Shown piece after piece: positions 11,201 through 32,838 of a stretch of 64,000 nucleotides of DNA. Origin of the DNA: Aplysia californica. Its lineage: Eukaryota. Both the position numbers and the translations under genes were made by a program. Each line of letters starts with the position of its first letter. Position 1 is the stretch's first letter. Below the pieces are notes generated by a model. The model saw only the letters and a list, made by a program, of their open reading frames with translations, made no database searches and was not told the DNA's origin. The stretch spans positions 844,379 through 908,378 of the forward strand of contig NW_004797441.1 of assembly GCF_000002075.1 (NCBI RefSeq). Reading direction: 5' to 3'.

Positions 11201-13375
11201 TTTTTACTTCTTAGGTTGTTTTTTTTAACACCCCCATCAACACAATTTATCTGATCATTTAGGTGGTGGGCTGCTGACCCTGCTATCAGGCCAACCTTAG
11301 CTGAGAGGGACACAATGGCATAGCAGAAAGACTGAGATACTTGATAAAACTTTCTCCCCACCTGGGGATCAAACTTGGGTCTTCTGCATGCAACACTGAA
11401 GCACATAACTACAACACTATAGGCATTGTTGTTTGTTTGTTTGTTTTTCTACTTCAATCACATTGCTCACAAACAGAGATGAAGTAGAATTTCAAGATAC
11501 CCCCAATCCACCCACCCCTCTCTTGCTGAGCAGTTGTTTTTCCTATATTAATAATTGCATCCATCGACCTCCATTCGACCTTTCTGTTTGTACTTATAAT
11601 TTATTGTTCATCTAGTGCCACAGTTCATACTATTAATCTATAGCTTTGTGAACTGCATGGTTGCCTAATATGATTGAACCATACTTATTCTTTTTGGCTC
11701 CAGTCATGTAATTCCCTAGCCCTATGTGTTTGCTCTAGTTTATTTTACAATGTGCCTATTGACGCCCAAGGTGCGATCTATGAAAATACTATACAGATTT
11801 TCTAAATTATGTTCATGTCTTCTTGGTGTTTTTCCTGCTGTTGAACAATGATGAGGAGGATAATGAGGAAGATGATGAAGATGAAGGGGTTTTCCAGATG
11901 AAAAGTCAGGCACCTTGCGCTGAAAATCTTTCAATATTTTGCTTATGTATTGTCTTTTCAAGATTTTGTCTTACGTTACAACAAATGATTATAATAATGA
12001 TGTGGATTGATTTATTGCAGGAAAGCTAAAATGCTCAAAGAATATGGAGAAAAGATGTTGTCCCTGGTTCTTACATGCATCGAAATGAATGACGTCCTCA
12101 TGTTTGAACTTGGGGAAGAGATTGGGGACAGAACAGAGCTCAACATAAAGGTAAAATTTCAGTAGTGTCCTTTTAGTGTTGCTGCTTTTAAGAAAGTTAA
12201 ACATGTTTTGATGTATGCTCCTCATATTGTATTGTTGAAAGCAGTAACGACCAAAAATGATAGCAGTGGTTAAATATTATTCATTCCTCTTTTTCTTCAA
12301 ACTGTCTCTCATTTTTATTCTGTAGTTTTAAAAAAAGGATAGGAACTCTCGGACACTTTTCATTTTAGCTAATGTTAGTGTTGTTGCTATTGTTAACTCT
12401 TTCAAGCTGGGGTGAGCCTCTTTCTACTGGCCGTAACATGAAAAAACACTTTCTCAGAGGTGAACTTGCCTTTGGCAAAAGACTTGAAGGACACCTCCTG
12501 ATGCAGTACAAACATATCTGAGCATCAACACAGATAGCTGGGGAGACACTGCAGCCAAAAACATCCACTGGGCTGCTTAAGCTAGAAATAGCTGAAGAAG
12601 TGTGAGGAGAAGCTCCTGGACTCAGAAGAAGAGAAGAGAGCCAGATGGAAGACACTGGCACTTGCAGATGTCCTCATACTTTAAGAATAGCCATATCTGC
12701 GCCTTGTTGTGCTGGGATTGCCACTCCTGCATTAGTCTCGCCAGCCATTAATTATGCTGCTCTAGTAGCAATACCATGAACTTTTAAGGCACAATTCGCA
12801 TGGTCTACAAGCTATCCAAGGAGACCTGCTACTGTGCAGTGAAAAGAAGGATCAAGATTCAAATGAGACTTTTACACCAAAGCAAGCAATCTATTTATCA
12901 ACGTACCAGTCTACCCAAACACCCATCCACTTACCTACCTATCTAAGCTATCTATTTGTCTGTCTGCCTGCCTATCTGTCTGTCTGTCTATCACTGGGAG
13001 CAAAGAACATTAACCCACAATGCATTGATAATTTACAAAGTACTTGTTATTTATGTACCTTGGTACAAATACAAATGTGCTTAGCAAATACCTTGCCTTG
13101 TAGATAATTTTGCCCTTTGTGAACCTCTTCCTGGCAGTAAAAATCTGAATCCTACTTTTTTTTACTTTTCCCCCTCCACCTCAACCCCAACCCTTTTCCC
13201 GCCTATCCCTCCCTTTGTATTCCTACCAGGAAAGCAAAAAAGCCATCATGGATGCAATGAAAAGATTCCTTGCTATTATCAAGAGTGAGGAATATCCTTG
13301 GGAGGAGGAGTGGGATCTTCAGAGAGCTGCAGAGAAGGTGGTGGACTGTGTTGTTGGACCTGTCAAGTAGGTTTA

Positions 13376-13428
<53 letters not shown>

Positions 13429-13698
13429 CTGTGATCATCATCATCAGGGTCATTCCTGTCAGTGTCAGTAGTAGCAGTAACAGTTGCAGTTGCAGTTGCA
13501 GTGGCAGTGGCAGTGGCAGTATCTGTAGCAGTAGGCCTAGTGGTTGCTGTAGTATCAGAGAACTTCCGATAAGGTGGACTGTGTTATTGAACCTGTCAAG
13601 TAGGTATACATAATTACAGTGCAGCTTCCCTATAACGACCTTCGATATAACGACATCCTCCGTATAGCAACCGGGTGCCCTGGTCCCAATTTTTTCTT

Positions 13699-13729
<31 letters not shown>

Positions 13730-14846
13730 GTATATAACCACATTTTTTTCTAGTCCCGACAATGTCGTTAAAGAGACTGCACTATATTATCATCATCGTC
13801 ATCAGCATCAGTAGCAGCAGTAGCAATGGCAGTGACAGTTGCTGTAATAGTAGCAGTTGCAATAGCAATAGCAGAAGCAGTAGCAGTAGTAGGCCTACTG
13901 GTAGTGTAGAATAGTGGTGGTGGTAGTGGTAGTGATGGTGGTGGTGTAAGTTATAGTGGTGGTGGTGATGTTGTTAGTGGTGGTGGTGGTGGTGTTAGTG
14001 GTAGTAGTTGTAATAGTAGCTGCAGCAGAAACAGAAGTAACAGCAACAGCAGCATTTGTGTTGTTATCATTTGTATTTTACCTGTCATTTCTGTTATTTC
14101 ATATCATCATAGTCCTTGCTATCAATACATTTCTTTTTATTCTTGGCATAGGGATTTACAAGAAAGGGGGTGGAGGGGATATTTAAATATTATTTTATTA
14201 TAATTGACTATTGTTTATTTTTTTGTTGTTTCAACTTTTTTACCAAGGGATACGAAGACATACACCATTGAAGAGATTAAGGTATTTTTGTCTGTGTGCG
14301 AAGCATGCCAAGAGTATGACCCCATTGCTGCCGACTCAGGAAAATTTCCATCTGCCCGAGGACTCATATACATGAAAACTATGAATGGAGTAATTGAATG
14401 GGTAAGTAAAGTCTTGCTGCTTCATGTTTTAAAACACCCAAACACACACACACACAGAGACACACAATCACACACACACCCAATCACANNNNNNNNNNNN
14501 NNNNNNNNNNNNNNNNNNNNNNNNNNNNNNNNNNNNNNNNNNNNNNNNNNNNNNNNNNNNNNNNNNNNNNNNNNNNNNNNNNNNNNNNNNNNNNNNNNNN
14601 NNNNNNNNNNNNNNNNNNNNNNNNNNNNNNNNNTATACACAACATTGCACATACAATCGCACTCAAATACACTCCAGTACATGCACATATACAAACACAT
14701 AGAAACACACATAGACACACACAAACACACACGTACACACACACATACTCACACACACACAGATATTATGTGTGTGTTTGTGTATAATGTTATAACATAT
14801 TTTTTGAAAATTGTAATGTAAAGCGATAGATAGACTTAACGTACAC

Positions 14847-14911
<65 letters not shown>

Positions 14912-17900
14912 GGGCACAAGGGAAAAACCAGCGATGTCATTTTTTTTCATTTTCTGGATTATTGTCTCTGCATGATGCCTGGCGGGGTCTGCTTTAGTCC
15001 ACCTAAGTCACTTAAGGAAAAACTGGTGCTGCAAGTCTCTGAGATGGTTAAAAAATATAGCCCACAATGGAAAAACCAGTGATGTCAAGCATACTTTTCT
15101 TTGTTGCGTCCCTTTGTGACCAATCAGTGATCGTATTTCAGTGAAAAATGGTGAAATGGTATAGGCTTAACACCCCTGTCAATAGTATTAGGTTATTTAA
15201 GAGGCAGGACATCCGAGTTTAAAGTCCATCCCCGAAAGGACCAAGCCAAATAAGAAATTCATGTATAGTGCCTTTCCCCTTTCACAATGCCGGACTGAGC
15301 TGAGACTTGAACCCCGGCACTGATGCTATTATCACTGCTAAACTGGAAAATCATTCATCAACACCCATGTTATGTTCACCTTTGATTTTTCGAACAACTT
15401 GGGCTGTCCAAACATCTCGACAAACAATTTGCACATTCGTTGGCAGCAATCTTTCTTTTCCTTATATCTACCCTCAAAGGGATGAAACTGTACTGTTTCG
15501 AGACAGTCGGCAAAAAAGGGGGGAGACGATGTGGCCAGCATGCTGCTACATTACTTTCTACACATTCTGCCTGCTCATGTAACTCGTGCACAGGCCAGAA
15601 CAAGAACTAGACCATGATCTGGTTTCTCTGTCATGTAGTTGTCCACTAGGGAAGGTACGAACAAGTGAAAATCTCATTTCCAGCCAGAGACCACAGCTCA
15701 TGGAATGTGACAGAGACCTGGCAGTGGTGAATGAGATGGTCACTGTAGATATGCCAATCAGTTGGGTGGAGCAATTCGAGACAACTCTTTGGAAACCCTC
15801 GCTGCTCCAGATGAAGGAGATGACACAAGCCGTATTCCAGAATGTGTTAGAAAACTTTAAAGCGTACTACCGTGTCTTCTGCCTTATACCCACTCCATCT
15901 CTGATTGAAATCTGCATCTCACAGGCCCAACCACAGCTAATGCAGTATAGAGAGAGCTGGAATGGTCCGTTTCACACAGCAATCATTATGAAGCTGGAGG
16001 AAAAGAAACAAGCTGCAAGACTCCAGCCTATGAAACCCGTCTATAAGAGCCCACTGACCATCAAAGCTGCCAAATATGCAGACATGAAGGTCTTAATAGT
16101 GATCTTGCCCAACAGCTTTTCTCTGAATTGTCCCATGCTGGAAGAAAAAGTGCATACAAGATTCTGATGACTCAGAGTCGTCATCCAAAAATGAATATGA
16201 AATAAAATTAAAATAAACATAGTGTACAAAACGGTGTGCTATTTTTTTGCTTGAACCATTTAGTTTTGTTTGTATTCACAAATGACTAAAGTAACTCACA
16301 AGTCATTGACTTCCTAGAAGATGAATATCTTGCCAATATTTTACAAGGGAAAAACCAACGCTGTCAGTTTGCTACATAATTTTTCTACTTTGCTCTTACC
16401 AAAACACTCATAACACGGGGACTGCAAAAATTCTCATTGTCAACACAAATGGTCATACTTGAAGTCAGTTTAAACAGTGGAGAGATCATTGTAGCAGAAA
16501 AAGAGTAATAAGTCTTTAAAGTTCTTCAATTATCTCCGAACTGCAAAAACTTGACATGGCTGGTTTTTCCCTTGTGCCCTTCATATAAAATATATTATCC
16601 ATCCGAAAAAGGTACAAACCGCAAATGTTTGATGGGTTGTTTTTTTTTGTTTCAGCTGAAACCCGTGGATAGATATGATCTCCTGTCCAAGCTTTTTCCT
16701 GGCATGCTGAAATCTTTTGAGGAGAACGATGAAGTGTTCACTATGATCAATTCAAAATATTTTACGGATTTTGGAGAGGTCAAGTCTGGTCAAGTTATTG
16801 CTGCCCCTCATCTTGGACAAATAATCCAGATATACCTGGATCAGGACTGTGAACCTCTGATCCGTAAGTGTCGGCTATACGGGTCACAAGGAGACCCATT
16901 GCACACCAACAGGAGGTGCAACCTTTCTGATAGTGGAAGGACACACAGTGTCTCGGTGTTTGTGTATGTTTGGGGGAGGGGGGAGTGGGAGGAGGTATCA
17001 GCAACAAAGGAGTTGGTTGGGAAGACTGAGGAAGATTGGGCTGACTTTTTTCAGATCAAACAATGAAAGCCAAAAGAATAAGAAGCTTTGTATGTGCCAT
17101 TTACCAACCTTCAGCAGTACCTGCCTCAGTTAAAGTTGTCTGTGCTGTTTATATTTTGATGGTTATTTGAGAAATGCATGTAATTTGAAACTTCTTCCAC
17201 CTTTGTTTCGTAGCCTAATCGGTGAAGCACAAAATTACTTTAACTTAATCATAGAATGTATTTTGATGGGTTGAAAAAAATGTTATAGCCTCCCTTCCCC
17301 TTGGAAAAAAAAGTTTCAAGATCTCTCCATATAGGGACAAAACCATAAGCTGTAGCTTATTTTGCTTATCTAGATATTGGGTTCCTCTTTTTCTTCATTC
17401 TTGAAGACAGTAAATCTGATTGTGTGCACAGACTTTGTGGTTCACTTTAGATCCCCAAGGCTGCCATACAGTTTCCTCACCATTGATGCAGCATATTGCC
17501 ATGTCTATGCTGCTGGGTTTGTGAAGTGAGTGCAGTGCTGAAGGATGTGCTGGCTGTAAGATATGAGTATGACTGTAAGCACTCTGTTGATTTTGTAATT
17601 TATCCTTTTTTTTCAGGAGCAATTACGGCCATCTACCCATCCAACCCGAAGGCACTGACACTTCACTACTCACAGCTGATGTCACAGATGCTGGACAGTG
17701 GAGACACCTCGAAGGTCACGAATCTGGCCTTGCTGTTCCACATAGCTTCAAAAATGCAGCCAGATGTAAGGGCAATGTAGGACTGGAGTAATAAGTTGAT
17801 CAGCTGGAATAGATTTTTTAGTGTCATTGATGCACACAAAGGTACCTCAATATTTGACATGGAAGAAGTTTTGTTTGTCATTCAATTCCATCTCATGTAC

Positions 17901-20530
17901 GTATTAGTAAAATATATTAAGATATTATAAAGCAAACTTAGTTGCAGATTTTCTTTTGTGTTTAGGCTACTGGACTCGTAATCGTGAGGTTGCGGGTTCA
18001 GGGGTTCGAGCCGTGGGCCTGACGTTGTGTCCTTGCGAAAGGCACTTTAAACTAATTTTCCTCACTTCACCCAGGTGGAAATGGGTACCCTGCCATAGAC
18101 AGCGAAAGATCTTGTCAGTATGTTAGTGTTTTAGCGCCTATAAATGGCTGCTTGCTCTGAGAAGTAAAGGCAGTTAGATGTGTGGGGTAACTTGGGAAGA
18201 AAACATCCTCTTAAATTGGTTAGTTTTCTACAGAAGAATAGATGATGTTCTACTGTCTCTGAGGGGTAGTCCCATAGTGGGCAGGCAGCAGACTGCCTTA
18301 CTCCAATTCGGTTGAGATGTTGATTGAGGGGTACATGTTGTGTTCTAAGTTGGAAGATTGTGGATTGATCTCCCCTCCTCAACTCATAGATTGGATCTTT
18401 GACCAGTGGTTTATTCATGTGGCCATACATCATCCTTCCTGTCGTACCTGTGGCCTAATCGTTCATCCAGTCTTCTTAAGGTTTGACTTGATCGTTTGGC
18501 AGCAGGTGGTGTAATCAGTAGGAGTATCATGCTGAGGGAGGCTAGCTCCTTTCTTTGCTAGAGCATCAGCTCTTTCGTTTCCCGGTATCCTAGTGTGGGC
18601 AGGAATCCATTGTAGGACTACTCTGATCTGGTGCCTACTTATCAAATTATGTAGACTCCAAATCAAGTGTGATATATCTTTGTTCACATCAGTCCCACTC
18701 TCAAGTGTCTCTAGTGTTGAAAGGCTGTCTGTAAAGATAACGATGTCTGTGGTAGCAAGTGGGTTAGTGTCAAATGAGTAGTTGATGTAGTTTGCTGTGT
18801 TGGTGATAGCCTGTTGTTCGGCAATAAAATTGGAGCAGAAGGACCCACTGGAATTAATAAAGACTTCTTTTTTTATCCGGTTGGGCAAGTTGATCACTGA
18901 CCCATATCCAGCGTTGATCGTTGCCTTAAAGGCAGATCCATCAGTGTATGAGTGGATCCATGTTGGTGGATAGGAATCGATTGTTTCAAGGGCTGAGTAT
19001 TTAGTGCCACAGGATATGTGTTTTTATTGCTCTTGTCCAAAAGTGTTTTCCTAATTTCTGGCTTTGCTATGGTGAGATGTGGTGGGAGAGTTGAAGGAAC
19101 TCTTTCCAGAGGTTCTCGTCTTTAAGGGAGGTAATGTTTTTCTTGGAGATTGAGGACGGTGTCAAGTACAGATTTTGTATTTTTTAGTCTTTAATTAAAT
19201 TTCCACTTGTCAACAAGAATTCTATTTGGGTGGTTATTTTCTAGCCTTTTAGATCTTTCGTATACTTCTAAAGCTGCCCGTTTTCTTTGAATTTCTAATG
19301 GCTCAATATTTGTGTGGATTTCCAAGGCCGCTGACATTAGGTGATTAGGAAGCATTTTAACATCCAGAGTGCAACTTTCCTTCCTACATTACATGATACC
19401 TGCATTCTGAAAAAAAGAGGCTCTTAAGCTGTGCTGACNNNNNNNNNNNNNNNNNNNNNNNNNNNNNNNNNNNNNNNNNNNNNNNNNNNNNNNNNNNNNN
19501 NNNNNNNNNNNNNNNNNNNNNNNNNNNNNNNNNNNNNNNNNNNNNNNNNNNNNNNNNNNNNNNNNNNTTACTAGGCTCTGTCTACCCTATTGAAGTCCTT
19601 ATCAACAAAACAATAATTACATATTCTGGCTGGACCAGTTTGGTCCAGTACATTCAGTCAGTCGGACACAGACAAGCGTGACATCCTTTGTTGTCGTCGT
19701 TCCGCCAGTCACGATCTTCGTATGTGTGTGGCATGGTAGTGAAATCAGACGCTCGTCATAAAATTCAAATCGAAAAGGCCGACAATTTTCCTCCAGTTGG
19801 GCAATTTTGTTTGAATTTTTTTTTGTTTTTTGGGGCTCAACACCTTTTATGTCAATTTGAATACCATATTAATGCATGCGTTTTACTGATAATCGTGAAC
19901 AAAGGCACAACNNNNNNNNNNNNNNNNNNNNNNNNNNNNNNNNNNNNNNNNNNNNNNNNNNNNNNNNNNNNNNNNNNNNNNNNNNNNNNNNNNNNNNNNN
20001 NNNNNNNNNNNNNNNNNNNNNNNNNNNNNNNNNNNNNNNNNNNNNNNNNNNNNNNNNNNNNNNNNNNNNNNNNNNNNNNNNNNNNNNNNNNNNNNNNNNN
20101 NNNNNNNNNNNNNNNNNNNNNNNNNNNNNNNNNNNNNNNNNNNNNNNNNNNNNNNNNNNNNNNNNNNNNNNNNNNNNNNNNNNNNNNNNNNNNNNNNNNN
20201 NNNNNNNNNNNNNNNNNNNNNNNNNNNNNNNNNNNNNNNNNNNNNNNNNNNNNNNNNNNNNNNNNNNNNNNNNNNNNNNNNNNNNNNNNNNNNNNNNNNN
20301 NNNNNNNNNNNNNNNNNNNNNNNNNNNNNNNNNNNNNNNNNNNNNNNNNNNNNNNNNNNNNNNNNNNNNNNNNNNNNNNNNNNNNNNNNNNNNNNNNNNN
20401 NNNNNNNNNNNNNNNNNNNNNNNNNNNNNNNNNNNNNNNNNNNNNNNNNNNNNNNNNNNNNNNNNNNNNNNNNNNNNNNNNNNNNNNNNNNNNNNNNNNN
20501 NNNNNNNNNNNNNNNNNNNNNNNNNNNNNC

Positions 20531-20583
<53 letters not shown>

Positions 20584-21923
20584 GGATGGATGGATTACAC
20601 AAATAAATGCATTGTAATACATTAGTATTAACTCAATCCAAATACCTTCTGTTGGAGCAGATTTTCATAGAAAAAGACATGGGTGCTATACTGGTGAAGT
20701 CTAAAGAAGACATGGGCAACCAAGTGACATTGCTGCAAATATTGGAAGAACTGTGTAAGCGACGTCCAGAGGCCATGGTCAAACACATAGATAAGTTAAT
20801 GGACACCTCAGGACTGAACCCGATGCTGTCTTCCTGGATCAACAACATGATCAGCTCTTTGGCTCTTCACGATAAGGTCAGAGTTATAAAGAATTTATCT
20901 GTATAGTTTTATTATTGGGTTGGTGAATTCTCATAAATTATATAAATGGAAGCCTATAGAACATATCACAGATAATTCTAATAATATGTCTCTGGCAGGA
21001 TAAAGAACATGGATACCATTCTCACATGAACATAGATTCCAACCAGACATGTAACAAATTAAAGCTGAGCTTACCAAGACATATGAGTGACAACAGCGAA
21101 TGGATAGAAACCTGTTAGCCAAGGATGTACCTATGTCTTTTATATTAGTTTGTTGTTTTCTGTGTTGCTTGCAGTTGATTAGGTTCAGTGGCAGATTCTG
21201 TGTGGTTAGTTAGCTATTTTGATGATTGGATTAAATTAACAAATCTCGTGATGTACTGGGGACACATTTAGCTGAAGAAAAGCTCTGGCTATTCTGACAA
21301 TTACTGAAAGTGTATGAGACATAAAAGAACTTTCATTTCTCTTTAGTTCAAGCTCTGTTTACAGGATCTGTTCAAGTCTGCAAAGCATCTGATCATGTAG
21401 GTTAGTCCTTTTTACATCCTGACAGAAAGAACTTGACCTCTGAAAAGAGTGCTAAAAGTGTTTATGAAATCTTTTGGTTTCTCGTCTGAATGCAGAAAGT
21501 TGCCCCCAAGGCCCTGGACTTTCTCTTTAAAAGTGTCAGGACAAACCAGGACAAGGCAAATCTACTGACCTCTTTGAATGCAGCTCGTATCATCGGCTTC
21601 AAGTATCCAGACTTACTGAAGCCACGTCGGTCTGAGGTGGAGAATCTGCAGATTGCTGATGCTGATGGTCAAAGCTTGCAGCAAACCATACTGGATATGA
21701 TTGACGGAAAAACGTAAGCCTTTCTTCAGTGCTCTCATTCTTTTTTTCTGTTTTTTTCTATCTATATAATTTATGTGATACAAGTCTTAGTGATACTTTA
21801 TAAAAGAAACCACCCTCTTCAGACCTAAAAAAATTAAAGAAAGGTAGCACTGAATATTCCAAAGAACATGACAGCGAGATTTTCATGATTCTGAACGTAT
21901 ATATATATTTATCCACTGATACC

Positions 21924-22009
<86 letters not shown>

Positions 22010-23779
22010 CAACCAGGGCAGAAGGGCATAGAGCATGCATTAGTTTTGGAGAAAGGGGAAGGGGGGGTGGGGGCAAGGATTGCGAAATGTTTTTGTTTTT
22101 TTCATTCGGCCCTCATTATTCATGAATTCTTTGTTGATTAATTCTTCAAAGTACTCAAGTTGTAGTGCTGTTTGAGAAAAGGCAGCATCTTGTTTCATGG
22201 AGAAAAGCAAACATAGGACAAATCATTGGTGTCACAAGCTATCCACTCAAGTCCATTTGGGTAATCTTTATACCAGAGACAAAAAACTAGTTTTGTTGTG
22301 TTGTTCCTATGAGATCAGGAATCATTAAAAGCAAGAACATTGTAAGCTTTGACCATAACATTAAACTGCATTTTGATAATGTTGAAAGGTGCATCTTTGA
22401 TAGAGCTTTGGGATGGTTAAAAAAAATTTTAAATTCTAAACATTTGGACTAAAGTGGATTGCTTACGATGATATGTGAGGCAGTGTAATGAAATCAGGCG
22501 CTCATCAAAATAAATGAGATAGGCCTACTAAAAATCGGCATTTTTCGGCCAGTTTGGAATTTTTTTTCAAATTTGTGGTTTTTTGTTCAACATCTTGTAT
22601 GTCCATTTAAAAACACTGTTATGTGCGAATTTTATGGAAAAACATTGATTAAAGGCTTTAAAAATTTGAATTATTTGCAGTTTCCAAGGACTCTTAAGCT
22701 AAGGAAGTCACCAAACTTTGACTACCATTTTTTCGCTAATTTTACTTCTGAAACCAGGCGACCCCACCTCCTTCAATTGCAAATATCTCGAGGTATATTT
22801 GAGATAAATGGATATCTTCTTCATCGAAAGCAAGGCAAATGAGCAACCTTTAAGATGACACTAATAACTCCTTAGGCCCAAAAATTGATGAGTGCCGGAT
22901 TCCACCGCATCAAGACACATATATTTGTTGTTTATTTGTTTATTTCTGCTTCCAGCCCTGATGACTTACGCAAGCAACTGGAAGGCCAACAGGATGAACT
23001 GAATGACCTCGTAGGCAGAGTGGAAGAAACAGAAGACGCCATTGCCGAAGTCCGCAGTGACGTTGATCGACAAGGACAGGAACTGGATACTGTAAAAAAT
23101 GAGGTCAATGAACAGGGTCAAAAGTTAGACCAGGTTGAGGAGACAGTAGAGGAGACAGTAGCCAAAGTGGAAGAGATTGACCAAAAGGTAAATATTTAGA
23201 GTTTTGATGTGTTTGTGTGTGTGTGTGTGAGCATGTGTTTACATGTGTACATTTTTGCTTGTGTTTGTTTGTGAGTGCGGATGTGTGTTTGCACTTGTGT
23301 GTTTGTGAAAGTGCACATTCATGTATGTGCTTGCATACCTGTGTGTGTTTGTGTGTGTAAGTGTGTGTGTGTGCATATATATGTGTGCACATGTGTGCGG
23401 GTATGTGTTGGTGTTGGAGGTCTTTTGTATGAAAGTTGAGGGGAGAGAGGGAGGAAGAGACAGAGGTACAGAGAGACAGAGAGAGTGAGAGTGATGTTGA
23501 AGATGGTTTTCTCTGTTCTTTTTGCCATTATAAGTGACTGGTAGTATCATGATGTTGGTGCTGTTGTTTGGATTACTGGAATTGTTTGACTACTTTTGAC
23601 ATTGTTGCTGTTGATACAGTAATAATATGAATTCAGCAGGGAAGTGAAGGTATCAGCTGTGAGCATCAAATCACGCATCAATTAAAACTTCACCTTTTAC
23701 CAGTTTTAATGAGAGGAATGATTTATTTTTAGAATATATGTGCATTTGTAGATTTTCCATGTGAAACCATCTTTCTCTC

Positions 23780-23820
<41 letters not shown>

Positions 23821-26800
23821 GGTTTTAAAGCTAAAAAAGCTGGGTTTTTATTGCATTTCTTACCATGTTTCCTCCTCTTCAGACGCTAAGCCATGCTCCA
23901 TATTGGTCACGTGATGTGTCCAAGTTGTTGAACCCTGAGTCTGAGCATGACTGGCGTCTGCTAAGCTCTCGACTGGGCTATAGCAATGATGACATCAGAA
24001 GCTGGGCCCAGCAGGCAGACCCATGTATGGCAATGCTCAATGAATGGTGAGTATATCCGATAAGCATGTTTTTATGATCTTTTGTTTCTACCCCTGCCCT
24101 CACCTCTTGCAGGTGGTAGAAGCACACTACTGGTCTGTCCTGTTCCCTTCCTTTCCCTCTTTTATGTTTGCTTGCCTTTCTTGCATCTTACCAGTGATAA
24201 ATGAAAGATCATTGTGTTGATTTGTGCCTCTTTACGCAAATGAACAACAAAAAATCAAACGCCTTTTTCAGTTTTGTTGCTAGTCACTTGCATCTATTGA
24301 AGAAACTTGATTCATCTTTAGTTTTCTTTCAGTACTAAGAATGATTCATAACATCATCTTTGGGTCCTCGCTGACACTCCTGAACCATGTCACAACTCTT
24401 TTTGTAATATAATTGTAGGATTAGTGTTCAGAGAAAAGACATTATGTTGTAGTAATGGCTTCTTCATGTATTTGTAACAGATTTTGTCAGGTTCATTTGA
24501 ATGCTTTTAATCAGTAGCTAGTTAGAAATTAGCATCACCATGGGGACTCTTCCCTAAAGACTTTCCGATTCAGCTGTAAATAATTTTTCTACTTGTTTCA
24601 TATAGTATAGCGAATGGTTCGAGTACCAGGTACGTGTACTCATGATTCTTTCTTAAATGGAAGCCTAAATATATGCATAAGTACTTTAAAATGCATTCCA
24701 ATTCAGTATTGTGGGTAGAGTTATTGCAGTGCGAAATGACTTGGGCTAAGAGTTCTGGAATGATTACAATAATAATGACTACTTTCCCTCTTGTCTCTGT
24801 AATGATGGGGGTCGCAACCATTTCTCATAAAGTTTCTCTGATATATATGTACTTGTTTACCCTGATATACACCCAAAACCAGTGTGTCTACTTTTGTAGC
24901 GAAAATTTTGTTTTTTGTTGATTGACCACAATGCTAAGTGGATTGTGTTGGATGCAAGCCTTTTTGTGCCAATGTGTGGTTTAAACCAAACTGCCTTTAC
25001 TTCAGGCATTCCATTACTCAAGTATACTGTGTACTCTAACGTAAGTGTGGGAAGTGATAGAAAAGAGAACAGACAGATAATCCGAACTCCTTGTCTTATA
25101 GGCCTAATTTTCTTGTCTCTATAACAGGTATGCCACTCGCAAAACTAGTGAGGCAAGCTTTGCCATCCTGACACAACTGCAAGAAATGAACAGGATGGAT
25201 GCAGCTATCATTGTGGAGAACGCTATGAAAAATGCTGGTTTGTCATCTTTCTCTTCTTCTCATCTTGTGGTTCTTATCATAGATGATCTTCGTTATTGTA
25301 GAAGATCATTTCGCTCATTGGCTTGAATTGAGCTTCATGTAGGCTACTTGTCGTCTTAAAATTTCGGTGTCAATTCCAATTTTTAAGGACAAACTCCAAG
25401 CCCTTTTTCTCTAAACATTATTTGTTTCCAGTACCTGTTTCCATGATCATCCATTTTCTTGAAAATTGATTTTTTTTGGACATATGTTCATATTACTTTC
25501 TTTAATTTCATGTTTTCCCCTTGGGAAACATAACTTTAACATTTCTGCCCCAACTGGAGATTAAATGCTTGAGGAAGCAAAGCAAACAGTTGTATTCAAT
25601 TGTGTTCACAGAGGCGGTGGTGGAAGACGAGGACTTTGAGTACGCCTCCCCTCCCCCCATCTTCATCAGCTACCAGTGGGGTCACCAGGAGGAAGTGAAA
25701 CTACTCAAACAGCACCTGGAGATGGCGGGCTATGAGTGCTGGCTGGACATCGGTCAGATGGGTGGAGGAGACAAACTGTTCGAAAAGATTGACAACGGTA
25801 TTCGGGCCGCCAAAGTTGTCATCAGTTGTGTAACAGAAAAATACGCCAAATCACCAAACTGTAATAGGGAGGTGAGTATGAAAAAATATTTTTGTAAAAA
25901 AAGAGAATGTGATAAACTCAAACAAAACTTATCAAACCAGTTTGGAAGGGTTGAGGGAGGGGGGGGGGTGTACTTAGAATGTTGTTAATTGTCTCGTTAT
26001 AGTTTGTTAGTTGAGCGTCAATACTCAGTTGTTTTTTTTCACATCCTAACTTTCAAGAAAGGCAGTGTGTGACAAGTCAAAGAGTCCTAATAAATAAACA
26101 GGGAGATTTCCTGCATTGTACCCAACATTGTGCTGTGATGTCCAGTTATATAATCTTGTTTTTGGAGAACCTCTAGATCAGTTGATAACACATTGGGTTT
26201 CAATATTAGATTTGTCTAAATCAAGGCAGTTTGGCAGTCCCACCATGTCTTATCAAAATGGAAGTTCGTTGCAAAAACTAGCCTCTTACAGAATTTCATT
26301 TGTTGAACAAGACATAGAAATCGTTGTCAAAGTCAGCTTGCTGAGATGCATGTTTTTGATCTGTGTATCTTTTTCTCTTATTGTTATTCTCCCTCAAACA
26401 TTCTTGATCTCCAGTATCCAGTAAATAAATCTATCTGCAATTCAGTTAGCAAGTGTTACATGTGCATAATGCATACTTAAGCATTCCAATACCTTAATTA
26501 TATGATTATGTGCCTTGAATCTGTCCATAAACACATGACATGTGTAGTTCTTCCTCTTACCAATGTATTTCCTGCCTGTTCAAGAAGCAATGTACCGTAA
26601 CGCTTCATCACCACATTTCCTGGGTTAAACTGGAAGGCTGCCAGTGGCAATGTGGTAAAGGGTTTGGAGTAGGGCTGGATCCTGCTCGTCAAATTTGAGA
26701 GTGGCGATTCACGATTCAGTCGGCTTCAATGAATCGCGAGTACGCGAGCGCTCATGGAGCTGTGGCGGAACACTGACTGAAACGGAACAGTGTCATTTCA

Positions 26801-29800
26801 ACGCCACTTGGCGAGCGCGAGTCCCACTCTTGTTGTTCCGCCATCCTCTCCGCCCCACACCCTTTGTTGCGCTGCTCTATCAACTGACCTCAATTAGTGA
26901 CCCCCATAAATTCACCCCCCCCCCCCCAACCCCATGATTCGCTAAAACAATGGCTCCATAAAATTCCTTCAGTCTATTGTTTGGACCCCGTTCATTTTGT
27001 TTTAATAGGGGGGTTAGACTATACCATCTTTTGTAAAATAAGGGGAGCCATACTAAGTGTTCTGTTCCGTTCTTGCGCTCATGACTCGACTCAGCAGTAG
27101 GTAAAACAAGCGACATGGTGGTGACAGCGACAGGGGAGTGAATCGGGAATCGTTTGGCGATACTGTTCCGTGTTCCGCTGAAGTGAATCGTGAATCACGT
27201 TCCGCAGGCAAGAGTGGCGATTCAGTTCCGTTCTCGTGCTCGGGACCCAGCTCTAGTTTGGAGTCTCTTTTAGAAATGTTTATGAGGTCATAGTATCAAA
27301 AGTTCCCAATGGAAAGAGCTGCATCTCCCCTCAACACTTAACAGAAATCATACATTCCTTTGATTTGTAAATGGTACTTGTGCTTTTGTATTTCGATCGA
27401 CTGTTACCCTAGTTTCACTTTTTCACTTTCACTCTCATGTTCCAGGTGAACCTATCTGTTGGCCTAAACAAATCTCTGATCCCACTACTGATGGAGAAGT
27501 GCGTGTGGCCACCTCCTGGCTCCATGGGTCCCATCTTCTCCGAGTTCCTGTTCATTCGTTTCTATCAGCGGGCGGGAGAGGAACTAGATGACCAGCGCTA
27601 CTGGCCAGGGGACAAGTTTCAGGAACTTCTCATGCAGCTCTCTATGCTTGGTCTGCCCCCCGATGAGGGAAAGATACAGCCTGGTAAGTTGTAGCATGAA
27701 TTATTAAGTTATTTAAGGAACTGTAAAGCAAGGACAAATGGGAGGAAAAGGGCATGTGGAGAACTGGTGCTTATATGTTTGCATCCATGTTTTAGCATAA
27801 CAAAGATGTACTGCATCCATTACAGTGAAACTAGAGTCTGATGAAGTCATTGGGCCTGACCCTCAATTTTATTGAATGCGAGTGTTGTTTTATGGCAATG
27901 TGAGCAACAAATTGTGTTACAATGTAGGGTTTAGCATACGGCAACGTCTGTTTCCACAGACGAGCATACAATTCAATATGTAGATTTACATCTCATGTCT
28001 AGATTTTTCCCTTCCGACACACGCACTAACAACCACCTGTCCGACCTCTCTTAACCCTGGCACACACTAAGATGCGTCATGTTGTACACATGTATCGAAA
28101 ACGCACTTGTTAGTGCTAAAGGAAGGCTTCTAATTGGAAGTATAAATTGTATGCAATAAGTTAGGCTAAATGAATAATGATCCACAGTGCAAGTGCAATT
28201 GATGGTTTCTTTGAATAGAGTTGATATGGTACAATGTGACTTCATTGAATTAGAATTTGCTCATTTATGTGTTCGAATTGAAGTTATTTTGTTGATTTCA
28301 ATTAATTTTTAAAAAATAGGGAATCTATCACATTTCGTTGAATCACAAGTTTTCGTTAAATCCGAGTTTGCTGAATCGGAGATACATTATTTATTCTTAC
28401 AAGGGTAAGTTTTAGAAATACTCTTTAGTCATTATCTTGTGAGGAGAATCATGTTCCAGCAAGACTGACTAATGTTTTCCAGAGACCAGTTTATGTTTCT
28501 TTTCTTTTCTTTTGTTTGGGTTTCGTTGTTATAGCAAGAGTTAGAATTATTTATGCTCTTTGTCTCAGTCTACCTGTATTTTGTCTTAATCCATTTGTCC
28601 TTCCCTGTTGTTGAACATTAGTTAGTTTCTTTTTCATACCTGTTCTGTGTGAACCAAATTTTTTTTAATACTGTGGGATTTATTCTTCATGTTGAGCCAG
28701 TCACTGCTCACTCAACATAATTTGTTTCCATTAGTGTACCGAAACTGGTGGATGCCAAAAGTGGAAGAAATCAAGATTGACAAGAGCAAGACACGTGGCG
28801 GAGGCAAAGGTTCTCAGAAGCAACAAGAAGAACTCGATAAACAGGTAATATGAAAGTTGAAATATTTGAACCCAATAAATCCAGCAACAAATAAACAAAG
28901 AATGGTACAAATTTTTATATAATATTACATCAAAGGTATGAACCTGTGTCTGAGGAATTTCAAGACATAGGACAAAAAGGGTTTTTTGTGGATCATAGCT
29001 TGTTTAGGCAAAGAAGAAGAGCAGAGTAATTTTTACCCTTTCACTTTCAGGCATTTTGCTACCTTAAAAAAGCTACAAAGTTTTACCTGCTCAGCAAATT
29101 TTTATTGCTTTCTTTTCTGTCAAGTTTTTAAGAATACAGACCGATGTATTTTTAGAAAATTACCTGTGCACAAATTTTCTAAAGTAGTAATCCCTGTTTT
29201 CTCTCTGTGTACTTGCACTTCCACACCCCTTTGCCCCTCTCTAGGCAGCCGAGTCCCCAGACGTGTTCATCTCCTACCAGTGGGGAAAACAGCCAAATAT
29301 CATCAAGCTCTATGAGCGACTCACCTCCTTGGGCTTCACCTGCTGGCTGGACATCAAACAGATGGGTGGTGGCGACTCCCTTTACGACAAGATTGACCGT
29401 GGTGTACGCGGCAGTAGAGTGGTCCTATCGTGTGTGACCCAGAAATATTCTCTGTCCGCCAACTGCCGGAGAGAGGTCAGTCTGGCAGACGCGCTCAAGA
29501 AACCGCTGGTTCCACTTCTCCTGGAGAAGATGACGTGGCCGCCAGCTGGACCAATGAGCATGGTCATGACGCAACTGCTCTATATCGATTTTGCACAGGT
29601 ACCTGGAGGTCACACGTGTTAACAATGCGTCACATCTGTGTCAGATATTTCTACATGATATCCACTTTTTAAAACGTTTTATCTTGTAGCATGCTGTGCT
29701 CAAAGAATTTATTTCCTTGCATTCCACTTTATTTTCAAAATATAATCTTTGAATAGAAAATTGCTATAATATTTTCAGTAAGTATCATAAATTGCGTAGT

Positions 29801-32252
29801 TTCTTCCAAAAATCCCAGAAAGATGTTGTTACACGAGTAGATTTGATATATCCACTGGTAATTCCATTCCTTTTTTTTTGTTACAGTAAAGTACTTTTCA
29901 TTTGTCTACAAACAGGACATCTGCATAGTAGTAAAATTGTAAGAGAAATATGAATAGAGGTGAATAGTGATGGTTAAGATGTCGTAGCTATTTTTCCTGC
30001 AATTAATCTGTTTATGATTTTTAAACTCTTTAGCAACTTCATAAATTTATTTTATTATTCAGAAGTTAATTCATCATGTATCATTCCTAAGTTTGAACAA
30101 TGCAGATAGTAAGGTTAGAATCAATTATTCTCTCGAGTGTTTTACATGAAATAGATAAGTTTTAGCCTTTTCCTTTCTTAAAATGAAGTTAAAAAAGAAC
30201 AAAACTGTTTTTATTTTTTTAGATGTTAATAACACAAATCCACAGAACATATAAATGCCAGCTCCTTGTTCCCCAGGAAAAGGCTCAGACAGAATGGAGT
30301 GGTCCAAAGTTCCAAGAGCTTCTAGACAAGATCAACGAGCATGCTCCAGAACTGGCAGCCAAAACAGAAGAGAAGAAGGAAACAACATCAGAAAGTGACA
30401 AGAAACCAGGCCCTACGTCATCAGACACGGGTAAATCAGTGCAATTTAAATCAGGCAAGAGGGAGCCAAGTCATGAAAGTATTGATAATAAAAGTCAAAA
30501 ACGAGAATTTGAACCTGAACCTGCCAATAAAGCTTTAAAAAGTGACCAGAAAGTAGTGGTTGAACCAGTTCAGTCTAAATTGGATAATGAGGACTCAAGT
30601 AAAAAAAGCAGTAAAGAACAAAGAGAGAAAGAAAACATTGTACCCTTTGGTAAAGTGCCTGAGAAAGAGGAAAGGATGACTGTAGAAGAAAAGTCAGCAA
30701 CTCCTGCTGCAGCATCCGTCAGAAGGACAACGGTGAAGACCAAGCAGCAGAAGCCTCATGAACCTTCCCCTCCACCATCTCGGCAAAAACTAGTAGAGTC
30801 TCACCCTCCTCCATCTCAACAAAAACCTGAAAGACCCCGCCCTCCACCATCTCAACGAAAACAGGAAAAACCCCGCCCTCCGCCATCACAGCAAAAACAA
30901 GAAGGGGGACTCCGCCCCCCTCCATCTCAGCAAAAGTCAAATAGTAAACACACACAACGTCCAATCTCTCAGCAATCCTCCTCTTCTCAACTGTCAAAAA
31001 CGTCATCTGGAACTGCTGCAAGGTCGAACAAAACTGAATCCAAAACTTCTGAGAATGGGAAAGGAGCAATACGTCCTCCCCCTTCGCAGCAGTCATCTCA
31101 GGGTGGACCATGGTCACGCCCATCTGCAGTTTTCCAGTCAGGTAAAACTCTGATTTCAGCAACCAAAAAAAAAGGGTTCACAATGAGAGTGAGCTCTAGC
31201 ATTGGCTTTTTTCGTTTCTTGTGTTTGCATCTAGACAGGTGAGTGTAATCGGAAGTCCAGAATCATATTCTTCCTTTGTTGTCTAGATGAGTTCTTTCTT
31301 TGACACTGATACTGACACAAACATGTACAGGCATGTGTGTGGATGTGCACACATACACATATATATAAAACAAAGATCATTTGCTCAACTCAAATAGATG
31401 GATGATGACATAGGCAAACAGACACACATGAACATTCTCCTTCTCCTTCACCTAGTCTGTAGTCTGGCTTACGTTGGGGCACAACTAGATTTTGCGACCA
31501 GCTTAATTCATTCCTCATTGTTCTCAGCTTTCCACAGTATGATGTTCTAGTCACTGCTAGTCCATTCTTTGATTGGTCTTCCCATCGTTTCCTCTGTTTG
31601 CCTCTTATTCTCCATTCTTGTGTTGCTTGCTGTAGAATTGTCCAGTTCGGATAATCGTATGACGTGCTTGCATCACCTCAGTTTGTGTCTTTTTATTGGT
31701 CAGGAGGTCTTTCACAGCCAAATGGCATTTCCAATTTTGGTTCTCACAGCCTCATTAGTTGTGTGATCTCTGTACAAGATATCGAGGAGTTTGCGAACAC
31801 ATCTCATCTCCAGTACTTGTATCCTTCTTTGGATGTCCACGTTTCACAATACATAATACAGCCAGACAGAAAATCATATGCTTGTAGATAGGCGGATGAA
31901 TGGATGGATGGATCAATAGATGGATGGATGGACAGCTGCTTAACGCAATGGTAGATAATGGGACCTGTGAAAAAAGGCTCCCAAGAGAATGAAAGCAACA
32001 CAAATGACAGTGCCTTGTTGAAGAAGTGAGTATTCAGCCTTTGTTGAGCGTCGAGGAAAAGCTCTTTTTTGAAAATTTACTGAACTGCACCCTTCCCCCT
32101 TTTTTAACAAATTTGTGCTATGAGAATCCGTTATGAAGATTGTTTATTTATAGTTATTAAACACCTGTATAAAAACATACATGGATATTATATATAGACA
32201 AACCCATGTGCGTGCGAACACACATACACACACACCAACACGTACACACACA

Positions 32253-32331
<79 letters not shown>

Positions 32332-32838
32332 AAACACACTCACACATTCGTATAATGCATTGGATATTTCTCATTTCTATTCATCTCATAAAGCTTGAAG
32401 ACCCTCAGCTCTGGGAAGGATTCAGATAAAAAAGATCCTTGAAAAAGGAAACTACAACAACATATGACATACATTTTGGCTAACCCTTCACGCAGCTGCT
32501 TATCCAGAATTTGTGTTATTGAAATCTGTTCTGCGGTGAGGAGGGGGGGGGGGGTTGTTGTGTGGTGGCTATTTTTAATGTATGACCACTGCGTTTTTCT
32601 ATCGGCAGGTCAATCTCGCCCTCCACCACAGAAAGCACGTTCAGTGAGCCCCAGGAAAGCAACAGAAGCAAAAAGTTCACCTCAGAGTAAACCGGCTTCA
32701 GGCAAAAACCAGGAAAGATCTGAACAGACACCTTCACCTGAGAAGAAGGACATTTCTTCACCTTCAAAACAAGAAAGATCACCTTCACCCCAAAAGCCTT
32801 CAAAGCCTCCCAAAAGTTCTTCTTGCACCACTTTGTGA
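1797..32838 (+). CDS. Spliced gene, 1682 aa: ARM/HEAT-like solenoid - coiled coil - Death domain - TIR_2 - TIR_2 - disordered tail - CaaX
   Basis: Coding exons, all GT-AG with matching phases: 1797-1861, 2844-3017, 3829-3988, 4960-5096, 5709-5856, 6332-6468, 7602-7752, 8545-8678, 9656-9680, 10374-10516, 12021-12150, 13230-13366, 14248-14401, 16656-16863, 17617-17765, 20661-20876, 21496-21713, 22956-23187, 23883-24046, 25128-25237, 25612-25871, 27446-27683, 28735-28844, 29245-29598, 30277-31141, 32609-32838. Total 5049 nt, open to TGA at 32836-32838. Start codon in strong Kozak context (gccacaATGG). Exons hidden in N-gaps cannot be excluded. Confidence 0.88.
6599..7034. mobile_element. MITE family A, copy 1
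   Basis: Imperfect TIRs TATGTG...GGTGAAATCAGGCG / CGCCTGACTCCACC...CACATA. Homologous copy at 22472-22921 and fragments at about 19721-19870 and 35495-35545. Confidence 0.75.
13377..13440. repeat. (CAT)n microsatellite
   Basis: Read directly; it accounts for the poly-Met ORF on the minus strand. Confidence 0.95.
13617..13784. mobile_element. Tc1/mariner-pogo type MITE
   Basis: TA-flanked TIRs CAGTGCAG...ATAACGAC / GTCGTTA...CTGCACT. Confidence 0.65.
14911..16582 (+). mobile_element. Degenerate DNA transposon with transposase remnant (possibly Sola-like)
   Basis: TIRs AGGGCACAAGGGAAAAACCAGCGATGTCA / TGACATGGCTGGTTTTTCCCTTGTGCCCT; subterminal copies of the motif at about 15062 and 16342; ATAT flanks. 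Internal ORF 15586-16167 ends in [15 protein letters not shown]. Superfamily uncertain. Confidence 0.65.
16656..21713 (+). CDS. Exons 14-17: ARM-like helical region resembling the VEPH1/Melted N-terminal domain
   Basis: Segments [66 protein letters not shown] and [16 protein letters not shown] appear to align colinearly with my recollection of human VEPH1 N-terminal helices. No alignment was computed. Confidence 0.5.
17965..18160 (+). mobile_element. tRNA-derived SINE with conserved central domain (Deu/Nin-like)
   Basis: B-box GGTTCGAG followed by GTTGTGTCCTTG...GGCACTTT...CACCCAGGT...AAATGGGTACC. Confidence 0.6.
18160..19340 (-). mobile_element. Non-LTR retrotransposon 3' fragment with RNase H (I/Nimb/Ingi group)
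   Basis: YTDGS, IFTDSLS and [19 protein letters not shown] RNase H motifs, then QLRTQH..LNQHL..CP...[10 protein letters not shown]; frameshifted. Confidence 0.85.
22472..22921. mobile_element. MITE family A, copy 2
   Basis: Colinear similarity to 6599-7034 including both ends. Confidence 0.75.
22956..23187 (+). CDS. Exon 18: coiled-coil segment
   Basis: [74 protein letters not shown] shows clear heptad L/V/I periodicity and is acidic. Confidence 0.85.
23883..25237 (+). CDS. Exons 19-20: Death domain
   Basis: [44 protein letters not shown]|[30 protein letters not shown] matches the Death-fold pattern DWxxLAxxLG...P...LLxxW...L...L..MxRxDA. Confidence 0.85.
25612..27683 (+). CDS. Exons 21-22: first TIR_2 domain
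   Basis: [46 protein letters not shown]|V, LIPLLME, WPP: the SARM1/bacterial-type TIR_2 pattern with Glu in the alphaC helix. Confidence 0.92.
26670..27255. mobile_element. hAT-type MITE
   Basis: Ends TAGGGCTGG / CCAGCTCTA with a perfect 8-bp TSD GTTTGGAG (26662-26669, 27256-27263). Confidence 0.8.
29245..30345 (+). CDS. Exon 24 and start of exon 25: second TIR_2 domain
   Basis: [64 protein letters not shown], then W..PKFQELL as in TIR1. Confidence 0.92.
31435..31900 (-). mobile_element. RTE-type LINE 3' fragment
   Basis: Minus strand encodes degenerate LYYCETW...RLRWCKH...GRP..EW and ends in a (GAAGGA) tail. Confidence 0.6.
32609..32838 (+). CDS. Terminal exon: S/P/K-rich tail ending in CaaX motif CTTL
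   Basis: Phase-1 acceptor at 32608 matches the donor after 31141; the ORF ends ...[14 protein letters not shown]-stop. Confidence 0.8.

Follow-up and report, generated by a model that had tools for sequence, protein, structure and literature searches.

We analysed a window of 64,000 nucleotides of Aplysia californica DNA (NCBI RefSeq assembly GCF_000002075.1, contig NW_004797441.1, positions 844,379 to 908,378 of the forward strand; positions below are those of the window). It contains an intron-rich gene of roughly 20 exons on the plus strand, reaching from about 5713 (at least) to 32838, which encodes two TIR domains, TIR1 and TIR2. The order of its parts is HEAT/ARM solenoid, coiled coil, Death domain, TIR1, a 56-residue linker, TIR2, a disordered tail and a C-terminal CaaX box. 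The exons were placed by tblastn with the paralog XP_005098116.2 (P0001, 1422 amino acids), and profile searches were run on each exon separately, giving the following features.

5713 to 21713, plus strand: N-terminal all-helical HEAT/ARM-like solenoid, at least 11 exons and about 700 amino acids (collinear open exons, 30-70% identical to XP_005098116.2)
22956 to 23187, plus strand: coiled-coil exon with a regular heptad (one heptad position is V, I or L in 10 of 11 repeats)
23883 to 24046, plus strand: Death domain, first exon (94% identical to XP_005098116.2 residues 786-841)
25128 to 25237, plus strand: Death domain, second exon (tblastn; joined to 25612 in contigs)
25612 to 25871, plus strand: front half of TIR1, with betaA FISY, BB loop and alphaC up to the Glu (Pfam TIR_2, E 2.2e-18)
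25869 to 25871, plus strand: TIR1 Glu codon, equivalent to SARM1 E642 by alignment, the closing codon of its exon
27446 to 27683, plus strand: back half of TIR1 (betaD, WPP with the SARM1 W662 equivalent, betaE and alphaE; the EE surface), from spliced joints
28735 to 28844, plus strand: inter-TIR linker exon, a YxNWWxP helix followed by a low-complexity part of low model confidence (spliced joints, AlphaFold2)
29245 to 29598, plus strand: TIR2 from betaA to betaE, including the BB loop (Pfam TIR_2, E 7.5e-22; spliced joints)
29473 to 29475, plus strand: TIR2 Glu codon, equivalent to SARM1 E642 by alignment and invariant in the family
30277 to 31141, plus strand: TIR2 alphaE, then a Pro/Ser/Gln/Lys-rich disordered tail (contig joints, sequence)
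32609 to 32838, plus strand: final coding exon with a basic stretch and the CaaX box (KSSSCTTL-stop; CaaX in 89 of 100 relatives)

The exon borders at 25612-25871, 27446-27683, 28735-28844 and 29245-29598, and from 30277 onward, are all AG..GT and phase-consistent. Five GT-AG joints (25237 to 25612, 25871 to 27446, 27683 to 28735, 28844 to 29245 and 29598 to 30277) are present in public contigs, each of four joints in three studies and the fifth in two, and contig coverage is confined to exons. The underlying runs are presumed to be RNA and are not recorded as such; exon-only coverage together with spliced joints is what transcripts would give. Both TIR domains are real, spliced and expressed. 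Introns split both of them, and the V of the TIR1 motif SPNCNREV is encoded by the following exon. The original prediction had assigned a tandem TIR protein to 25612-30345; the TIRs do lie there, as parts of a spliced gene rather than of one open reading frame, and the Death domain, coiled coil, HEAT solenoid and CaaX box lie outside that interval. Splicing rules out a reading of the region as a single open reading frame or as bacterial. Furthermore, two in-frame splice donors, at 30430 and 31141, both lead to 32609 and give short and long disordered tails; use of the former skips 711 nucleotides, the long tail is 237 amino acids longer, and both forms end in the CaaX exon. The short-tail joint was seen in contigs (loose ends at 30437 run into the final exon in X7 and X12), and the long exon was covered to 31040. 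A raw poly(A) run (X21) contained almost no exonic reads.

Both TIR exons passed the Pfam cut-off for TIR_2, with the E-values given above, and both fell below that for PF01582. Exon by exon, TIR1 and TIR2 are identical at 43/76, 19/41 and 9/17 positions, that is, at 71 of 134 (53%), which bears out the earlier estimate of two TIR_2 domains roughly half identical; the motifs FISY, WLDI(G/K)QMGGGD, SPNCNRE and SANCRRE are likewise in frame where they had been placed. The claim that each domain has a Glu at the catalytic position was also confirmed. Specifically, the TIR2 Glu aligns with SARM1 E642 (the Glu of HKEIV) in a phmmer alignment to 6o0u (E 5.5e-4; the E642 numbering was counted from the printed alignment), and the TIR1 Glu aligns with it by family profile to 10ra/6o0u (E 3e-8). 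AlphaFold2 models were made of the paralog XP_005098116.2, standing in for the window gene. Whole-fold superposition of its model on the SARM1 TIR gave Z 16.8 and a root-mean-square deviation of 2.1 Å over 129 residues; in the fold search the Hydra TRR-2 TIR came first (Z 18.4), and SARM1 (16.8) and MyD88 (16.7) were level with each other below it. By sequence, the enzymes SARM1, Cat1 and AbTir rank above MyD88-type TIRs.

Further pocket residues were compared across 39 tandem relatives. The equivalents of SARM1 Y568, D594, G601 and L603 are conserved. The unusual pocket residues of the SYQW, MGGGD and NCxxE motifs differ from those of SARM1 and are nearly invariant in the family. Judged from codon comparison with Bulinus, in which nonsynonymous difference (pN) was 0.06-0.19 and synonymous difference (pS) saturated, strong purifying selection on the gene is shown. 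In enzymatic TIRs two successive domains build the active site together, one contributing its BB loop and Glu and the next its EE surface, across the BE interface (PMC8635717, 10.1101/2022.05.07.491051), as the background quoted in the original prediction had it, and the adenine-contacting Trp comes from the EE surface. Equivalents of D594, G601 and W662, namely the BB-loop Asp and Gly and the EE-surface Trp of such a composite site, are present in both window TIRs.

The two domains are not equivalent among these relatives. The Glu is present in TIR2 of all 39, and in TIR1 of 31, being replaced by Gln or Leu in the other eight. The W662 equivalent, scored in 36, is Trp in every TIR1, also where the Glu was lost, and Trp in 33 and Tyr in three TIR2s. 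In a quick tree, built on a short alignment without two truncated TIR2 rows and one near-duplicate protein and rooted at the midpoint, all TIR1s were separated from all TIR2s across phyla with a Shimodaira-Hasegawa-like approximate likelihood ratio (SH-aLRT) support of 96, so that the duplication is old and a recent one is rejected; given the well-supported branches, the TIR1 Glu must have changed three or more times. In one clade of small animals from metagenomes, the linker is only 22-25 residues long. Identity of its members to the family consensus, with the core value in brackets, was 0.28 (0.82) for the front and 0.72 (0.71) for the back of TIR1, and 0.70 (0.79) for the front and 0.47 (0.68) for the back of TIR2. 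TIR1 in this clade thus keeps only the EE half, and TIR2 mainly the BB-loop/Glu half. Such complementary decay is the trace that a single polar site, with the TIR2 BB loop and Glu on the TIR1 EE surface, would leave, and it suggests that the two TIRs may build one polar composite site. The pattern fits assembly in cis and in trans alike. The idea that a linked pair forms one composite site had been put forward in the original prediction, and it gains comparative support here with a polarity that was not foreseen; that the site is pre-formed is not supported, as discussed below.

Two side observations concern related proteins. A Runt gene adjoins P0040, a member of the short-linker clade. Chains with several TIRs also exist outside the family, as the distant proteins P0083, P0090 and P0038 have 3-7 TIR_2-like repeats each.

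The window gene ends in CTTL-stop, a CaaX form. Cxxx is the C-terminus in 89 of the 100 matches that have a TIR of this type with 70 or more residues beyond it, and Leu is the last residue in 63 of these, against a background of 0.3% Cys; the box is usually preceded by K-S-K-S-like residues. A CaaL end predicts geranylgeranylation and membrane anchoring. In addition, a second family in lancelet and tick (P0111, P0114, P0117, P0139 and P0147) has one related TIR alongside a Death-like region, and its C-terminal ends are double-Cys/CaaX; for one member the source gives the label protein kinase.

Upstream of the TIRs, the model of XP_005098116.2 residues 1-790 was all-helical, with a predicted local distance difference test score (pLDDT) of 85.7. 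Its Foldseek matches were generic HEAT solenoids (SF3B1, CAND1, importins) at TM about 0.3, so by fold search the solenoid is HEAT rather than strict ARM. No specific relative of it emerged: Atlas scores stayed under 0.9 (MMS19/HEAT) and the other matches were generic HEAT proteins. The family profile of the coiled coil matched coiled coils such as gp26, sigma-1 and Lpp. Pfam Death was found at XP_005098116.2 799-873 (E 2.5e-10), the window Death exons being 92-96% identical to those of the paralog, and Pfam found no SAM domain in the paralog.

With a long ARM-like N-terminus, a Death domain in the centre and a pair of TIRs after it, the window gene matches, by the architecture quoted in PMC6836662, ecTIR-DC family 6 (Gerdol et al. 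2017, PMID 28109746), a family described there as invertebrate-only, with an ARM-like region, a Death domain in the middle and two TIRs; the gene also shares the absence of a transmembrane segment. It therefore adds a member to a named, known invertebrate family. The descriptions of that family consulted here mention no coiled coil, CaaX box, catalytic Glu or asymmetry. Literature searches on CaaX or tandem-TIR catalysis in this family returned nothing, and the TIR asymmetry, the family-wide CaaX and the concerted evolution of the gene pair described below were not found in the literature searched. Named two-TIR relatives are from gastropods, annelids, a nemertean, a flatworm, a rotifer, a crinoid and hemichordates. 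Every relative that was looked up by name, a minority of the matches, proved to be an invertebrate. A bacterial origin or close prokaryotic relatives were rejected, as the contig scan gave one 3.3 kb contig of a 'Sedimenticola' metagenome-assembled genome, most likely host DNA, in which an isolated TIR2-type stretch (L010:506-886) is 65-68% identical to animal proteins.

The gene is an ortholog of neither SARM1 nor MyD88. Like SARM1/TIR-1, it has a helical-repeat N-terminus, an oligomerisation module, the E642, Y568, D594, G601, L603 and W662 equivalents and a similar TIR fold. However, the ARM-SAM-SAM-single TIR architecture is absent: there are two TIRs, a Death domain and coiled coil in place of the SAMs, and a C-terminal prenylation signal, and the solenoid is HEAT-like and not of the SARM1 ARM type, with no SARM1 among the Foldseek matches listed. 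W638 and R569/R570 of SARM1 are also replaced, by Asn and by Gln/Trp. With MyD88 it shares a Death domain directly upstream of a TIR as well as the TIR fold, whereas it differs in TIR_2-type domains with a catalytic-position Glu, PF01582 being below cut-off, in the second TIR, in 790 extra N-terminal residues within a protein of about 1,400 amino acids or more, and in the CaaX box.

Its closest relative is A. californica XP_005098116.2 (LOC101850562), which has the same architecture. This protein maps just upstream of the window on the minus strand, with most exons at 95-100% identity (C171, 835632 to 806136), and is therefore a paralog, not the window gene, lying head-to-head with it. The Death, TIR1, linker and TIR2 exons of the two genes are 92-100% identical in amino acids with a synonymous difference of 0.07-0.38, whereas the N-terminal and coiled-coil exons are only 31-70% identical with saturated synonymous sites (0.47-0.93); the tails differ, and most flanking introns do not align. 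Low synonymous divergence is not intrinsic to the TIR exons: comparing them with a third paralog on C35 (0.65-0.83) and with Bulinus (0.74-0.97) showed saturation in both cases. The pattern fits an old duplication followed by probable gene conversion limited to the exons of the Death-TIR-TIR half. A homogenised effector with a diverged N-terminus is what one would expect to see in a receptor whose sensor varies and whose output is shared. Conservation of the head-to-head pair in other snails was considered and rejected: Bulinus has a same-strand pair, uniformly 88% identical, so the arrangement looks lineage-specific.

The third paralog, P0031 (XP_012946843.1, C35 about 377900-385500), keeps both Glu residues, has its TIR2 on a very long branch and, as annotated, lacks the CaaX end. 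On the minus strand at C298:404134-405475 lies a single TIR that is also related; its loop reads QMGGGD, and in its HLCNRE motif Leu occupies the WxxxE position. Outside the protein, the TIR1 intron contains an interspersed repeat of about 590 bp (26670 to 27255) with a 14-nucleotide direct repeat near both ends; it has 358 candidates in the genome, the best 40 at 93-95% identity, and high depth in contig sets. Intronic open reading frame fragments on the minus strand at 18131-18897 resemble, by eye, the RNase H end of a non-LTR retrotransposon. Scans of the window for tRNA genes and for Rfam families at gathering thresholds gave no matches.

We next consider what the Glu predicts. Most animal TIRs that belong neither to Toll-like receptors (TLRs) nor to interleukin-1 (IL-1) receptors retain it, and of 61 assayed in E. 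coli only 12 showed activity (Hurieva et al., 10.64898/2026.04.20.719644). Since the Glu is common in animal TIRs, its presence here is expected; by itself it is unremarkable and a weak predictor of activity. The original prediction, whose main point it was, had placed it correctly. When the sequences in Table S4 of that study were compared with the window TIRs, by eye only, rows 144-155 had a similar pattern (SYQW...S.xC..E), 4 of them being active and 8 inactive. The active ones come from Latimeria, Clupea, Magallana and Adineta. Those of Latimeria (H2ZXV5), Clupea (A0A6P8EVF3) and Magallana (A0A8W8J0Z4) share by eye the SYQW, WxD and S.xC..E pattern and a non-aromatic residue or Tyr at WxxxE; they are different proteins, assayed as isolated domains, and none has an MGGGD loop.

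The WxxxE position bears on the product. An aromatic residue was found there in all cyclase TIRs analysed (Manik et al., 10.1101/2022.05.07.491051). This rule is not strict, since the Clupea TIR, which has Ser there, makes cyclic ADP-ribose (cADPR) (10.64898/2026.04.20.719644). The aromatic residue of the 2'/3'-cADPR producers (SARM1 W638, AbTir W204) is absent from both window TIRs, and in the family the position is Asn in 30/39 TIR1s and 37/39 TIR2s and aromatic in none. The Latimeria TIR, with Asn four residues before its Glu as here, depleted NAD+ and gave no cyclic product (10.64898/2026.04.20.719644). Asn at this position, never aromatic in the family, favours linear ADP-ribose (ADPR) over cADPR isomers, and the more likely predicted product is linear ADPR, perhaps with canonical cADPR. 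The cADPR isomers named in the original prediction are accordingly less likely than it implied, the alphaC Trp being Asn in both TIRs.

Our preferred reading, held at slightly better than even confidence, is that the gene encodes a membrane-anchored, oligomerisation-gated, SARM1-like NAD+ hydrolase (NADase) in which the obligatory Glu would come from TIR2 and the partner surface from TIR1. We infer all of the catalytic steps. The CaaL end would be geranylgeranylated and, with the nearby lysines, hold the protein on the cytosolic face of a membrane, where the fast-evolving solenoid may sense a ligand or partner, keep the TIRs apart, or both. Activation would cluster the chains through their coiled coil and Death domain, and the TIRs would close head-to-tail, the obligatory site being formed by the TIR2 BB loop and Glu on the TIR1 EE surface, in cis or between chains; where the TIR1 Glu is kept, as here, a second kind of site could extend the strand. 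Such an active site would be inducible, not pre-formed. NAD+ would then be cleaved mainly to nicotinamide and linear ADPR, possibly with canonical cADPR, and not to 2'/3'-cADPR.

In favour of this NADase are the high rank of SARM1 among relatives of solved structure, both in sequence and in fold, the conserved Glu, pocket residues and W662 equivalent, the complementary decay, the purifying selection, the active TIRs of similar pattern and the CaaX box shared across the family. Several points weigh against it. Of the Glu-bearing animal TIRs assayed, 49/61 were inactive, including the look-alikes in rows 147-152, 154 and 155, and Table S4 contains no MGGGD-loop sequence, that is, the family is not among the assayed TIRs (10.64898/2026.04.20.719644). 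W638 of SARM1 is Asn in both TIRs and R569/R570 are Gln/Trp, and W-to-A at WxxxE lowers or abolishes activity in SARM1, L6 and ROQ1. Only one evolutionary event underlies the complementary decay; the other losses of Glu go with general decay. AlphaFold2 on the tandem, from an alignment of only 36 sequences, folded both TIRs (pLDDT 86.7) with a low-confidence linker and a predicted template modelling score (pTM) of 0.54. Finally, Death next to TIR is the layout of the MyD88 scaffold.

That last point leads to the strongest competitor, which we judge unlikely though to be taken seriously: a non-catalytic, MyD88-like scaffold whose twin TIRs would engage the TIRs of receptors or adaptors and start a TIR filament, whose Death domain would recruit kinases, and whose Glu would be structural or ancestral. 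It would account for the adjacency of Death and TIR and for the missing WxxxE Trp, and TLR2, IL-1R9 and IL-1R10 have the Glu and are inactive. The top structural match is the scaffold-type TIR of Hydra TRR-2, with MyD88 tied with SARM1 behind it. Expression of the family is raised in bivalve gills, where it is co-expressed with TLRs and MyD88 and was proposed to act as a TLR adaptor (PMC5549309, PMC6836662). A scaffold is harder to reconcile with a TIR2 Glu that is invariant from molluscs and annelids to the nemertean, flatworm, rotifer, crinoid and hemichordates, and with E-to-Q changes limited to TIR1, both of which fit a chemical role; it also runs against the sequence ranking of SARM1, Cat1 and AbTir above MyD88-type TIRs.

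Quite improbable is the version closest to the original prediction, in which a composite site is pre-formed in cis and is active or primed before any higher-order assembly, making cADPR isomers as a signal. The ancient, fixed duplication (SH-aLRT 96) and, in one clade, complementary decay with a linker of 22-25 residues would fit a closed pair. However, the linker here is about 55 residues and partly disordered, and at pTM 0.54 no confident TIR1-TIR2 packing was obtained, which lends a pre-formed site no support. Such a pair would moreover leave the coiled coil and Death domain redundant, the cyclisation position is non-aromatic, and a constitutive NADase would presumably be toxic. Catalysis on another substrate or of another reaction (cADPR hydrolysis as by Raw, a TIR-fold cADPR hydrolase reported in PMC13455253, base exchange, or action on nucleic acid) would explain a pocket that is unlike SARM1 yet nearly invariant within the family, and it is very improbable, the active TIRs of similar pattern having used NAD+.

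Beyond the inducible NADase, a broader picture can be drawn that we regard as doubtful. The family would be a pan-bilaterian set of invertebrate immune receptors, intracellular and prenylated. Their variable HEAT solenoid would detect danger, and their linked TIRs would close in cis to give one polar site for NAD+ cleavage, with the TIR2 BB loop and Glu on the TIR1 EE surface; the head-to-head paralogs of this genome would diversify the sensor, while gene conversion would keep Death-TIR-TIR matched for co-assembly. Whether animal TIR enzymes beyond SARM1 have a part in immunity is a question raised in 10.64898/2026.04.20.719644, and this family is old and widespread in invertebrates. In its linked, asymmetric TIR pair the two halves of a composite site would be separable by point mutants, and the natural variants with a Glu-less TIR1 would serve as a built-in control. 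The lipid-anchor signal, together with a gene pair diverged in the sensor and homogenised in the effector, yields concrete predictions on where the protein would be located and on its receptor-like evolution.

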